Both the position numbers and the translations under genes were made by a program. Below are positions 1,939-13,900 of a DNA stretch of 64,000 nucleotides, in pieces. The notes beneath the pieces were generated by a model. The model saw nothing but the letters and a program-made list of their open reading frames with translations, ran no database searches and was not told where the DNA came from. The stretch is from Macrostomum lignano (Eukaryota), in assembly GCA_002269645.1 (NCBI GenBank), contig NIVC01000728.1, positions 186,001 through 250,000 of the forward strand, written 5' to 3'. Position 1 is the stretch's first letter. Each line of letters starts with the position of its first letter.

Positions 1939-4900
1939 TTAAACTAACGAAAAATCCGGCCAAAGCAGGGCCGCACGCCAACGCTTGGTGTCCTCGTCGA
2001 TATGGGTCAGATCATTGCCCTCAAGGAAATGGCCGCTGTACCGGACCAAGGTGCCGCAGAAGCCAGCTAGCTTCTCCAGGCCCTGTCCAACCGTGGCCCG
2101 GCTGTTGGAGTAAAGCTTAGCCCGCCGACGCAGATAGTCCAGCGATGTGAAGTCGCGCAATCGTTCGATTGTGTTGGCAGCGTTGTTCGGCACGGAGCGA
2201 AAGACCTGTGCGTTTTGGGAGGAAATATATGCTTAAATAAGCTTAGTGCATTGATGCATAACTATTTGCTCTCAAATATTCCGGATACACATGCAAGGGT
2301 AGAAAGGGTCTTGACTAGTACGTTCCAAAATGTTTTGTTATGTTGGACTGATTTTAATCAGCCGCGTACCTATTAAGTGTTACGCCTGGAGCTCTTTTTT
2401 TTATTAGAGGCAGGGGGGTTGTGTGCACCCTGGCGCAATTTAAGCGTCATTTGCACACAACCGGCGAGAGGCATTACTGCCCATTCCGCCGACTCCCCTG
2501 AGCAGGCATACAAGCGCGCTGATACGTTACGCAGGCACACACACACAGGAGTGTACAGCGGCCCTAACTTTATCAATTGTTAGGCATGTACACTTCACTG
2601 CGCCTGGGGGGTTGGCTCTCAAGGCCGTTAATTGCACAAGCGAGCCAAGCCAAGATTCCAATCCAGCCCCAAATTAATGTGACTGCACTTGGAATCGAGC
2701 CTGGATTGCGGCACACCAGAGCAGCTGCGCTACCGCTGGGCTACGCCCCCCCCCCACGCCTGGAGCTCAGATAGGACTGCAGAAAATTCACATCGGCCAG
2801 ATATTTCTATAGTCACGTACTTTAGGTCGTTGTCTGCCTGAATAATTGTGCATCAGCAAAACAATTTTTGAAGACAACTTATTCTAAGCTTGTGTCCCAT
2901 CTGGAGCTGTGTCGTTGGCATAAAGAAACACAAAAATTTGGCTCAGCTGGTAGGTGCTTCTCTGCTCATCTTTGCCCACATCCTGATACGCACCTCGTAC
3001 ATGATCTGCGAATTCCTGGTGGCTCGGCCGCGCCACAGGCCCCAGACTGCCGCTTCACCTGGGTCACCGATGGCCGCCTCCCTTAAACGGGCCGGCATGT
3101 CCAGATGTTCGCCCCAAAGCGTCATCCGCAATGTTCGGACGAAGCCGCCGCTGCCGCTTCTGCCGCCACTGCTGGGCGGATCTTCCAGTCGAATGGCCAG
3201 CTCGGAGTTCTTGTAGCCGAGCAGGCCGTGATCCGTGACTGACGGGCTGCCGATGATGGCCAGGCGGTCGTCCGCAATGAGCAGGTTGCTCTGCACGTAG
3301 ATGTCCTGTGCCAGCCAGCCGTCGGGAATGCGCTCGTACTTTTGCAGACTGCACACGCTCAAGTATTCGTCCGGGGCGATGTTGCGCTGCAGCAGTCTGT
3401 GCACCTGGCGAAAGGAAGCTGCTTTCTTTGGTGAAAAAAACTAGGAAGAATATAATTACGGATGAAAGTGGGAGAATGGCTCAGCGGTGATGCGTATGAA
3501 TCTCGTTTGAAAGTGTCTGGGCTCGTGCACAAAAATTGGTCTGGAACTTTTCTTGCGATTCCCACCCATGAGGTCACAAGGCACAGAGTGTACATGCCGG
3601 AAGATGAGAAAGTCAGGGCCGCTGTCCACCCTGTGTGAGCGTTGCGCCAGCCTATGCATCCGTGTGCTTGCTCCGGAGTCAGCGGAATGGGCCGGACTGC
3701 TTGCTATTTGCGGCAGTGAAATGAAACGTTTGCGTTGAAATTGACGGGGATTATGTCGTTCTGCAAGTTCTGCAAGCACACGATGCTTGGTCAGAGTATC
3801 TAAATCGATATATGGCCATCGTTTGTTTTGAATGTAACTTGGTTCAAAACTGCAGGAAGAAGGTGTTTAAAAATGTACTATATAAAAAGATTCCGGGGCT
3901 AGACTTTGTCTGGCTAGCAGCTCCTGCATGGACCGCCTCTCCGATCTGACCAACTTCTACGCTTGGATCTAACGGCCTCAGTGCGACAATAAAGTATGAG
4001 TCGCGTCGCAATTAGGAAACATTCCTTGCCCTGGGCACACAAAAGCAAGCACGGTAAAAGAACGAAAAAACAACTCCCTTTACCAACGAGTCTTCGCCAC
4101 GAAAGATGGCGCCGTAGACGTGCTGCATCGCTCGTCGATTCACGTAATCTCCATCGGTCTCACTTAGCAGTCGGCCTTGATGCCGAGGAAGCAACGGTAT
4201 CACCAGGTAGATTCTGAACGCCTCGCTTGCCTGACGTGCGGCTAAAATTCGCTTGTACATGTAGAAACTCACGCGATTCTGAACCATGGCCGCTTCCGAG
4301 CAGCGATTGCGCGACTGGGACACGAATAATTCGCTCTCCAAGTAGAGAAATCGGCGCGCATTTTTAATGGCGCTGTAGTAAGCCTGCAAGATGCTGCGCT
4401 CCTCCAACTGCCGATAGAGCCCGCCCGACCATTTGCCCAGAGAGCGCAGCACCGTCACCCGACAAGAGTGCGGCACTCGACCCTGCGAGAGGCGCTCCAG
4501 ACAGTTGATGAACTCCTTTGCGTTGAGAGATGGTGCAGATGATCGATTAAAAGTACAATTAATTTATACCCCAGAAGTCAATAAAAGGTTCCCATTGGAT
4601 AAGGCAACACACCCGTAGGATGGTAGCTCGTAGCAGATTAAGAATCAAAAGGGAGATAGAGAGGGTTAATGGCAACCATAAATCATTCTACTACAATAGA
4701 GAATTCAGAGTAAGAGATACAAAGCTCTATGCATTATCATCTATACTACACTCATCGACCTCGTCTCAGCCGTTGGTGAACTAATTGCAAGTTGCTTCAC
4801 TGCTCTCCAGAAAAGGAACAAACAAGCATGCACTTTTTCGAGTAAAACAATCCTTGTTGCTCTAACCTCATCTTGTACAACCTCGTTGCCCTCTAAATTG

Positions 4901-10900: not shown

Positions 10901-13900
10901 CCAGCTAATGCTGGCACCCATTTTACAGCTGAACACTCGGAAATTGTTCCGAGTGGGTCGAGAATCGAACCCCCGACCTTTCAGTCGTGAGTCCGACGCT
11001 CTAACCACTAGTTGTCAGGTAATATTGCTAGTTATAAGTGCTTTTAAAAAAGCAGGCAATTTCCTATCTCGCAAAAGCATTTTGCACGATTAACGATTAA
11101 AGCTGTTCTTACTCTAGTTAAGCATGACTTGCAGCTTCATCAGTCGGTTTCAGATAAAACTCACACGTGCTGACTGGTGTCCCACGATCCCCAGGTCAGA
11201 TCGACGCCCGAGATCAGCGCTACCTTCTGGTCGATTACGACGCACTTCTCGTTGTGCTTGTAGTACAAATCCTCAACTCTGCAGCCCTGCAGGGAAGCAA
11301 TGGTTGAAAAAGGCGTGGCACTTTAAATTTACTGACAATTAGTTGAAAGCACGAATCTGATTCCACTGGCGGTACTGAGGAGGGACAGGAGAAGGGGGAG
11401 AAGAAGAGAGAGGAAAGGAGAAAGGAGTGAAGAGCAGGAGAAAAGAGAAGGGAGAGGAGAGGAGAGGAGAGAGAAGATTAGAGACTAGGGAGCTGAGAAG
11501 AGATTCAAACCTTGAGCAAGCCGAATTGCCGTTGTGAAGTTTCAAAGCGCCCGAGGGCGGGATAGAGAGGCCTCGCGCATGAGCACAGAAGGTGAGAAAG
11601 CTACCAATTTATTGCTAAAAGCAGCGAAACATGTTAAAGACATTAATAAATATTCGAAGTAGGGTTGTAGTCAGGCACCTGGTGAAACGCTTTTCGCGAC
11701 ATCGTCCCACAATCAGAGCTGGGGCAATTCAAAATTGACTACAGAGTCGCACTCACTCAGGGTGTACAGCGCGGGCCTGATAGCTTTCTAAAACTATGCC
11801 TCAGTGCGGCTCTTTCGTAGCATTTTTCAAAGAATCAATTTAGCAAAAAGCCAACCATCTTTGAGCTGCCAGAGCCACCAGAGGCGGTTGCCCCTATTCC
11901 TGGAAAGAAGCGGCCGAAGCAGCGGTTGTACAATCGGCGGCGCATCACTAAGAATGCTTTCATGAGGCCAAGTGCCGGCTTGAAGAATTCGTTACTAGCG
12001 TCGTCCAGATCGAACGGGCTCAGCATGATGTGCACGTTCGGTACGCCTTCGAAGTAGTCCAGCACGTGTAGACAGGCGTTGGTGTCCTTCAGACAGTTTG
12101 GATTGTCCAACAGAATGAATACTTGAACCCGGAGTTTGGCCTGCGGAACAAGAAGCGGGCTGGTTCGGAATGTTGCTACTGGCAGGAATAACAATACTGA
12201 ATGAGCCATTTGACTAATTAATTGAAATTGAACTGAGACATTAATTGGAGGTGAGGGTGGGTTAGGTTCTGATAAGAAATGAGAGATGGGGTGCGCGACT
12301 GAGGAAGAAAAGAGCTAGGGGAGGTTAAAGAGCCAATCAGAAGGCAGAGAGGGAGAGAGATAAAAAAGGAGAGGTGGGTGCGCGACTGAGGAAGGAAAGA
12401 GAAGAGGTTGAAGAGCCAATCAGAAGGCAGAGAGGGAGAGAGATAAAAAAGGAGAGGTGGGTGCGCGACTGAGGAAGGAAAGAGAAGAGGTTGAAGAGCC
12501 AATCAGAAGGCAGAGAGGGAGAGAGATAAAAAAGGAGAGGTGGGTGCGCGACTGAGGAAGGAAAGAGAAGAGGTTGAAGAGCCAATCAGAAGGCAGAGAG
12601 GGAGAGAAAACAGAGTAAACAGAGACGGTGGCGAATGAACTGAAAAAAAATCGCGATTCGCGATTTGCGACAGTCATTCTTAGACTTCATCAACTCAGGG
12701 CTAGATTCAACTCATTTACTAGGCAAGTACTCTAATATTCGATATTAGGCTCGTATACCCATTATACTCTATAACATACTCTACGCTCTCAAGGGGAGTT
12801 TCATATCTCCAAAGTTTCATATCTCCGAAGTTTCATATCTCCGACACTTCATATCTCCGACACTTCATATCTCCGACATTTCATATCCCCGAAACTTCAT
12901 ACCTTCTAAACTTTTTATCTACGACAAGCCTACGCTAATCCAAACGGAGATATGAAATTTCGGAGATATCAAAGTCCCCGCTCTCACATGGCGACAATTT
13001 TTCCAAAACGATGCATTTTTGCGCCCCACTCTATACTCTCTACTTATCAGTAGGCAAACTCTGATATTTTCCAAACCTTCTCGATGAGCAGCCGGCCCAG
13101 CTGGTACCGGCCGTCCGGGTCCGGCCGCTTCAAATAGACCTCCGGCGCGAGCACGGAACCGCAGACGAAAATCTCTGCCTGCGCCATGTCGATCGCGTCA
13201 GCTACGGCGTAAAAATACGAACCGGCGTCAACGTACCACTGCGCTTTGGTGGCGCTCCGCGGCGGCGCAAAGGAATGAACGGGCACCTCGAGGTCCAGGT
13301 CCGACTGCAGCTGCTGCTGCTCCAGCTCGTTTTGCCGCTGCCGCTCCGAACGTTCTTGGCCTCGGCCGATGATGCTCGCGCCGGACTGTCGAGCCTCGCG
13401 TTGCTTTTTCCGACGTTTCCTCCGCTGCTGCCGCAACAGCTGCTGCTGGTGTCGCTGTCCGGCGTAGAATGAATTCTCAGAGCCGTCGGTGGTCTCCCCA
13501 GTGGCCGCCATCATCATCGCGGTCAGCTCGGTACTTCTGTGGTCGACAGTCGCGTTGTTGGCGTTTCTGCCAGTAGCCGTCGAAGCCGCAGCGACTGCAA
13601 AAGCGGCGGCCAGCGCCTGCTCCTCCATGGCTGCGGAGTCGCTGACCGGGTCGTTTTTGGATATTCGAACCCCGGCGCCGCCGCCAACGGATGCGCTGCT
13701 CAGAAGGCTGTTCTGGGTGCTGCGGATGAGCGACAGTCGGCGGCTGAACAGAAAGCCATTCGATGCGGTGGGCGGAGCCTCGCCAAGCACGGAGGAGCCC
13801 CCGGCCTCGGTGGACACGATCGAAGCCATCGGGGCGTCGTCCCTGGGAAAAATGGGAGCAGCAGGATGCATATTGCTTGCTTCTTAGCCCTTGTAGAGTG

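Follow-up and report, generated by a model that had tools for sequence, protein, structure and literature searches.

A PLD1/2-class gene of Macrostomum lignano with degenerate HKD motifs as a candidate phospholipase D pseudoenzyme

The locus and the gene model

The DNA stretch analyzed here (hereafter, the window) comprises 64,000 nucleotides of contig NIVC01000728.1 from the flatworm Macrostomum lignano, has a G+C content of about 50%, and is rich in minisatellites. On its minus strand (18971–1939), it carries a gene for a phospholipase D (PLD) of the PLD1/2 class with degenerate catalytic HKD motifs; the gene is referred to below as the pseudo-PLD gene, and its product as the window protein. 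According to the model built here, which was extended by the use of homology to active PLDs, of public M. lignano protein models, and of the sequence itself, the gene consists of 19 coding exons with no internal stops. All of the 18 introns are of the GT–AG type, and every exon junction is in phase. The preliminary description of the locus had placed 18 exons, in phase and free of stops, at 2994–11286. The open, in-phase reading holds, but the exon number and the span had to be revised, as that interval contains nine of the exons, from the one encoding HKD1 to the one encoding HKD2. Depending on the junction between exons 9 and 10, the product is 1917 amino acids (aa) long (homology-guided junction, 11996/11276) or 1967 aa long (junction of the UniProt model, 11856/11286). 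Both alternatives are in frame; the length observed in active PLDs favors the exon 9 donor at 11996, while the public model P0187 favors that at 11856.

Three public M. lignano models, namely P0001 (A0A1I8I7M6, 'Phospholipase D'), P0187 (UPI0007A2354F), and P0003, map to positions 9107–17596 of the window, and all of them are fragments. P0187 is 100% identical to the window model over 840 aa, whereas P0001 differs from the window by a V>L replacement, a difference suggesting that the polyploid genome holds a second, almost identical copy. P0003, named 'PPM-type phosphatase domain-containing protein', is in the wrong frame in the first part of exon 4. The support for the model differs by exon: exons 2–14 are covered by the public models, exons 15–19 were identified by homology, and exon 1, together with the start codon, was inferred.

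Exon 1 (18547–18971) would begin with a putative ATG at 18971, the start being uncertain. Its frame is open, and its donor, GTGGGT, joins exon 2 in phase; the exon contains no recognisable domain and is covered by no annotated protein. Exon 2 (17396–17597; YHRLLVSFGNRVEWQLYFKSEELL...), found in P0003, lies at the position where the PX domain starts in PLD1/2, and gave no match to the PX profile. It is followed by a 36-nucleotide micro-exon (GLINRFSRKWRM; 17108–17143; phase 0), which is also present in P0003 and is flanked by AG/GTAAGT sites, and by exon 4 (16629–17067), which encodes the PX/PH junction motif FLHVSRLSF (compare FLEVSxLSF of the PLD1/2 class) and then a low-complexity linker. 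The PH region starts in exon 5 (15444–15669; identical to P0001/P0187), has its core in exon 6 (15049–15204; ERWMFVGDTYIGLLNMESNEIEEVMLFDAEFHV...), and ends with the C-terminal helix in exon 7 (14537–14629). In exon 8 (13077–13842), a low-complexity linker precedes region I (FAPPR...WYVDAGSYF...LAPEVYLKRP), which is supported by tblastn matches to Lottia and tick PLDs and by an hhalign match to the profile of active PLDs (E = 2.5e-28). Exon 9 (11996–12140; AKLRVQVFILLDN...) has the two possible donors mentioned above, and exon 10 (11165–11286, with its acceptor at 11286 or 11276) carries the degenerate HKD motif 1, YYKHNEKCVVIDQKVALISGVDL, in the same form as in P0001/P0187.

Exon 11 (10538–10718; identical in P0187) opens an expanded insert of about 450 aa that separates HKD1 from region III and continues through exons 12 (10186–10440), 13 (9109–9331), and 14 (7566–7816). 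P0001 reads through the donor of exon 13 into a stop, and the QKQQ/QSYKAIT junction of exon 14 is confirmed by P0187. Exon 15 (5462–6071) ends with region III, where PWHD has become PVHS and the polybasic/aromatic motif binding phosphatidylinositol 4,5-bisphosphate, PI(4,5)P2, is kept, whereas exon 16 (4867–5390) contains a second insert with a poly-Gln run, for which no homologue was found in Pfam or in the protein database search. Exon 17 (4084–4515) includes LRSLGKWSGG..., LYLESELF in place of IYIENQFF, and IPLLP; exon 18 (2994–3404) carries the degenerate HKD motif 2, DIYVQSNLLIADDRLAIIGSPSVTDH, with the Asn of GSxN changed to Ser; and exon 19 (1939–2205; VFRSVPNNAANTIERLRDF...WPDFSLV) ends with the stop codon TAA at 1941–1939. 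An AATAAA-like signal is located about 100 nucleotides downstream of exon 19.

Large mini- and microsatellite arrays, with periods of 4–83 bp and up to 147 copies, occupy nearly every long intron of the gene (7221–7537, 8077–8831, 9690–10105, 12271–12607, 13899–14372, 14677–14900, 15759–16541, and 17804–18339), and it is probably because of these arrays that the public gene models are fragmented. In addition, two tRNA-like intron stretches on the minus strand (about 10950–11020 and 2690–2760), with T-arm sequence of the GGTTCGATTC type, suggest fragments of short interspersed nuclear elements; no tRNA was called by ARAGORN in these fragments.

Catalytic motifs and domain composition

The loop-trimmed catalytic core of the window protein was compared with all PDB chains using phmmer. 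The comparison revealed colinear homology to regions I–IV of the PLD1/2 catalytic core, with both lobes aligned, and the matches were confined to PLD1, PLD2, and two further PLD entries, among them PLD alpha 1. In the alignments with human PLD1 (6u8z; E = 8e-79) and PLD2 (6ohm; E = 2e-77), three replaced residues are aligned with the His of HKD1 and with the His and Lys of HKD2. The catalytic-His position of HKD1 is occupied by Asn (AAC, 11253–11251, minus strand) within YKHNEKCVVIDQ (H-N-E-K), the aligned pair being 'ykhNekcvvidq'/'wahHeklviidq'. Within the HKD2 segment YVQSNLLIADDR (V-Q-S-N), His is replaced by Gln (CAG, 3293–3291) and Lys by Asn (AAC, 3287–3285), with 'iyvQsNlliadd' aligned to 'iyvHsKlliadd'. 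Direct reading of these codons bears out the replacements given in the preliminary description, and the drift of neighboring motifs noted there (GSANIN>GSPSVT, IYIENQFF>LYLESELF, PWHD>PVHS) is seen in the same alignments. The Lys of HKD1 and the Asp of both motifs are kept, so that motif 1 reads N-E-K-x4-D and motif 2 reads Q-S-N-x4-D instead of the two HxK(x)4D motifs of an active enzyme. The Pfam model PLDc still matches at HKD1 (24.3 bits; cut-off, 21.9), and PLDc_2 stays under its cut-off.

Among the PLD relatives compared, the H/K/D residues of motif 1 are kept in 170 out of 177, and the H..K pair of motif 2 in 145 out of 163 aligned sequences (12 have no residues at these positions, and six deviate). 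Judged by these counts, the replacements in the window protein are far from chance variation. It is very unlikely, too, that they reflect an error of assembly, sequencing, or gene modeling, with normal HKD motifs in the true gene. Although the public models are fragmentary and P0003 contains a frame error, three separate codons and many neighboring signature residues differ, the HKD1 sequence (HNEK) is identical in the independently annotated UniProt/UniParc models P0001/P0187, and the HKD2 replacements are found again in P0012, a separate paralogue described below.

Catalysis in the PLD superfamily is attributed to paired His and Lys residues of the two motifs (PMC7786179), and the HKD motifs are likewise presented as critical for the activity of PLD1/2 (PMC2978679). 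For PLD2, even a K758R variant has been used as the inactive control (PMC2173982). Since three of the four His/Lys positions are occupied by Asn, Gln, and Asn, canonical hydrolysis and transphosphatidylation are predicted to be absent, and, judging from the residue losses, the window protein should have neither activity on phosphatidylcholine. The alternative that it is still an enzyme, acting by a non-canonical mechanism or on another substrate, at an altered site made up of Asn/Gln/Asn together with the Lys and Asp residues still present, is considered improbable. In its favor, the Lys of HKD1 and the Asp of each motif are still there, the pocket is the region most conserved between the paralogues, and the recurrence of the N/N replacements in other lineages could indicate a selected alternative chemistry. 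However, the superfamily mechanism as described above depends on the paired His and Lys, a PLD2 variant with the conservative K758R change already serves as inactive control (PMC2173982), and the window protein has lost both His and one Lys. The Asn of GSxN, the NDR motif, and the Asp of RDSE have been lost as well, partly in a different way in each paralogue, which looks like relaxed catalytic constraint.

For the membrane-binding modules, PLD-specific PX and PH profiles were built from 34–35 proteins of the PLD1/2 class, with all M. lignano sequences excluded. The PH profile matches residues 438–518 of the window protein (30.1 bits, E = 1.9e-10; hhalign probability, 94%, E = 1.2e-7), and the same region matches the PH domain of Trichuris PLD (BLASTP, E = 4.7e-6); the generic Pfam PH model gave no match in the window protein. 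Based on these profile matches, a PLD-type PH domain is present between the PX position and the catalytic core. It has been reported that the R237/W238 pair of the PH domain is needed for the targeting of PLD2 (PMC2173982), and this pair is kept in the window protein (exon 6) as ERW. The PLD2 polybasic/aromatic motif (554–575), which includes R554 and R558, binds acidic lipids and mediates activation by PI(4,5)P2 (PMC2173982). In the corresponding 20-residue stretch of the window protein, the equivalents of R554 and R558, seven basic residues, and four aromatic residues are kept, and the 14-residue segment with which this motif begins, next to region III, is identical to that of human PLD1.

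The PX domain gave a different result. No Pfam match for PX was found in the window protein even at E ≤ 10, and the PLD-specific PX profile reached 3–5 bits, at the junction motif FLHVSRLSF alone. With the same profile, the scores are 29–32 bits for the intact M. lignano PLDs and about 146–147 bits for P0137, a metazoan transcript contig discussed below. A demonstrable PX domain was rejected, as Pfam, a five-sequence hhalign comparison, and the 35-sequence PX profile all returned the FLxVSxLSF junction motif alone; this match is not independent evidence, because the region had been chosen by that motif. A PX remnant at the fold level is conceivable. Thus, of the PX–PH architecture proposed in the preliminary description, the PH domain is confirmed and the PX domain is not. 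Neither of the two lineage-specific inserts, i.e., that of about 450 aa between HKD1 and region III and that of about 210 aa with poly-Gln before the IYIENQFF-like region, has a homologue or a domain detectable in Pfam or in the protein database search.

Relatives, the paralogue P0012, and neighboring genes

A HMMER scan of 1.84 billion representative proteins with a two-sequence profile returned 2951 relatives. The M. lignano protein P0012 scored 768 bits, the next match scored 223 bits, and no close relative was found outside M. lignano among these representatives; the clade of the window protein and P0012 thus appears to be restricted to Macrostomum within the databases scanned. Three clusters of M. 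lignano PLDs are among the next-best matches, namely P0017 (PAA48524.1), P0020 (PAA80745.1, PAA56079.1, PAA50367.1), and P0021 (PAA73030.1, PAA89145.1, and others). Both HHEK and HSK are intact in the P0020 and P0021 groups, and HSK is intact in the P0017 fragment. The search for active paralogues recommended in the preliminary description thus had a positive outcome, with at least two groups of intact-HKD PLDs (P0020 and P0021) in the species.

In the C-terminal half, the identity to the window protein is 40–44% for the intact M. lignano PLDs and 33–38% for those of other animals. That the M. lignano PLDs rank highest fits a gene that was duplicated in the flatworm lineage and then diverged rapidly. 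When a neighbor-joining tree was computed for the C-terminal half, the window protein and P0012 were placed on a long branch beside Balamuthia (100 aligned positions). This placement was treated as a long-branch artefact, and the statements on relationship made here rest on the identity ranking and not on the tree topology.

P0012 (A0A1I8IZT2) is a predicted 358-aa fragment encoded outside the window. It corresponds to the last three exons of the pseudo-PLD gene, with its first residue at the first codon of exon 17, and shares 62% identity with the window protein over 369 aa, with two indels, both of them in frame (60% identity in exon 17 and 51% in exon 19). The fragment carries the identical HKD2 sequence EIYVQSNLLIADD (YVQSNLLIADD, including the QSN of exon 18), and the identity between the two proteins peaks at 92% over this degenerate block. 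Since P0012 shares the HKD2 losses, they predate the duplication that separated the two genes, and both frames have stayed open since.

The intact PLDs provide a measure of what has been lost. In 176 intact PLDs, 53 columns show a conservation of 90% or more; 38 of these are preserved in the window protein and 42 in P0012, and ten are lost in both. Half of these ten shared losses are situated in or just after the catalytic signature; the ten comprise both HKD2 signature residues and five others from the block after it. In seven out of ten cases, the replacement is the same (H>Q, K>N, R>H, D>N in the RDSE Asp, Q>E, F>L in IENQFF, and R>Q), while the remaining three, i.e., the two Asn of GSANIN (S/R and T/A) and one Gln (T/S), were replaced differently. 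On sequence evidence, this pattern is as expected if catalysis was abandoned once, early, while the fold and a further property of this region remained constrained.

Neutral evolution was simulated by unconstrained substitution of the last 369 codons of the window gene until 62% protein identity was reached. The frame remained open in none of 1000 runs, with 7.5 stops on average, and the simulation is conservative because indels were ignored. This result bears directly on the alternative that the pseudo-PLD gene is a silent or recently dying duplicate, which has lost its function and whose frame is not yet visibly broken. There are reasons to consider it: M. lignano is described as a hidden polyploid with many duplicates (PMC10468722), the window protein has diverged much further from other PLDs (33–38% identity in the C-terminal half) than have the intact PLDs of the species and contains long low-complexity inserts, exons 15–19 have no annotated protein, and no NCBI model was found for the gene. 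Nevertheless, a dying copy is unlikely. The catalytic losses are common to a 62%-identical paralogue and both genes are open long after the inactivation, an outcome not produced by any neutral run; GT–AG is kept at all of the 18 introns; conservation peaks in the former active-site block; and the polybasic motif has remained without any change.

The remaining features of the window were recorded as well. Directly upstream of the pseudo-PLD gene, there is an open frame of 316 aa (19364–20311, minus strand) with a hydrophobic, signal-peptide-like start and a Thr/Ser-rich linker, for which no Pfam match was found. It is followed by a non-LTR (long terminal repeat) retrotransposon at 23609–27034 (plus strand) with two open reading frames (ORFs; 23609–26029 and 26033–27034) and with Exo_endo_phos, RVT_1, and RNase_H domains, and by exons of an SLC6/SNF transporter (30132–31678, minus strand). 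An ORF with a rhomboid domain (PF01694, E = 4e-20) is located at 42622–43413 on the minus strand, with a possible upstream exon at 43515–44582 (minus strand) that is EF-hand-like (DTDRSGRTSWPDF). The GxSG motif of this ORF reads IGAAGATYALVGAH, so that the catalytic Ser appears to be Ala, and the later His position may be Gln (AQPAGLAWG); the rhomboid ORF could be a second pseudoenzyme in the window. Further genes are those for a Bcl-2 family member (46141–46884, minus strand), a two-pore-domain K+ channel (51677–53085, plus strand), and an ATAD2-like AAA+ protein with a bromodomain (57559–62941, minus strand).

A candidate pseudoenzyme and its comparison with known systems

Taken as a whole, the data favor the view that the pseudo-PLD gene is a PLD1/2-class paralogue that has lost its catalytic machinery and is probably kept by selection as a non-catalytic pseudoenzyme. 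As far as can be judged from the sequences, the window protein is a pseudoenzyme by the usual definition, i.e., it is homologous to an enzyme, has lost the catalytic residues, and is maintained. The assignment to the PLD1/2 class rather than to a PLD5-like type, made in the preliminary description, agrees with the closest solved relatives being PLD1 and PLD2, with the Gln/Asn replacements shared by P0012, and with the presence of intact paralogues in the species. Through its PH domain and polybasic motif, such a protein would dock on acidic or PI(4,5)P2-rich membranes and act there without hydrolysing phosphatidylcholine. It might serve as a scaffold or adaptor, compete with active PLDs for membrane sites or activators, or bind lipid headgroups via the disabled pocket, and the two large inserts would probably give new interaction surfaces.

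Several points weigh against this interpretation. The gene is known here from genomic DNA and from predicted protein models covering exons 2–14; for exons 15–19, the database searches gave no protein match, and an NCBI BOX15 model of the gene was not found either. P0012 is a predicted C-terminal fragment, and HKD1 lies outside its coverage. The argument for maintenance combines the shared loss, the open frames, and the simulation, which stand in for a ratio of non-synonymous to synonymous substitution rates. With no PX domain detected, the protein may be targeted to membranes in another way than PLD1/2. The AlphaFold model, based on P0001, is uninformative (mean predicted local distance difference test score, 36; predicted template modeling score, 0.30), and the role of a lipid sensor or scaffold, raised in the preliminary description, is one that we infer from sequence features.

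If the pseudoenzyme interpretation is true, a naturally dead protein of the PLD1/2 class, retained by selection together with its PH domain and PI(4,5)P2 motif and existing beside intact paralogues, would be a natural separation-of-function allele. M. lignano is accessible to RNA interference and transgenesis. Non-catalytic roles of PLD1 and PLD2, including scaffolding, have been proposed (for instance, PMC4323006), and in the wild-type proteins such roles are hard to separate from the lipase activity. The window protein would join the few known pseudoenzymes of the PLD superfamily (PLD5, FAM83) as one of the PLD1/2 type, and it hints at the recurrence of the same inactivating substitutions in unrelated lineages. 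As it is a lineage-restricted, predicted protein, its immediate impact is moderate. In the full-text searches made, no natural pseudoenzyme of the PLD1/2 class and no Macrostomum PLD was found described, an absence that is no proof of novelty.

Two sequences from other lineages resemble the window protein at the catalytic motifs. P0137, an intronless metazoan coding region (277–3516) of a Logan transcript contig (SRR32924703), has VHNEK and VHSN together with clear PX and PH domains, and shows parallel drift at IENQFF, PWHD, and GSANIN. Its best match is a tick PLD (36%), and it shares 33.6% identity with the window protein. The 'Phospholipase D1' of Balamuthia mandrillaris (P0010) has HNQR and VHSN. 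Like the window protein, both have Asn at the HKD1 His and at the HKD2 Lys; unlike it, both keep the HKD2 His. The replacements in P0137, P0010, and Macrostomum look like independent events. His to Asn, Lys to Asn, and His to Gln are all single-nucleotide steps. Ease of mutation may account for the recurrence to the same degree as selection. Tentatively, and with more doubt than confidence, it may be proposed that pseudoenzymes of the PLD1/2 class arose repeatedly in eukaryotes by the same one-step Asn replacements, and that this recurrence points to a common, selected, non-catalytic use of the pocket. If this were true, the pocket could be a 'reader' of phosphatidylcholine or phosphatidic acid, or the protein a dominant-negative regulator of active PLDs on PI(4,5)P2 membranes.

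Among the known systems, the mammalian PLD1 and PLD2 share with the window protein the colinear regions I–IV, the PH domain, the polybasic motif, and the C-terminal VFRxxPN...RDF. The window protein differs from them in lacking both HKD His residues, the HKD2 Lys, the Asn of GSxN, and a detectable PX domain, as well as in its size (about 1900 aa compared with about 930–1070 aa), with about 450 aa in the expanded loop that separates HKD1 from region III and a further insert of about 210 aa. The intact M. lignano PLDs (P0021/P0183, P0020/P0180, and P0017) share the FLxVSxLSF junction motif with the window protein, but they keep HHEK/HSK and detectable PX and PH domains, whereas the window protein is devoid of these HKD motifs and of a detectable PX domain.

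PLD5 and the FAM83 proteins (DUF1669 pseudo-PLDs) resemble the window protein in the loss of HKD residues and in being non-catalytic, or presumed so. PLD5 is a type II transmembrane protein. It is of the PLD3/4 type and differs from the window protein in architecture and descent; no PLD3/4 chain was found at E ≤ 1e-3 in the PDB search, though such structures exist. The FAM83 proteins, which anchor CK1 isoforms (PMC6008594), are restricted to vertebrates and have a single pseudo-PLD lobe, whereas the window protein belongs to the PLD1/2 class and has a PH domain and two lobes.

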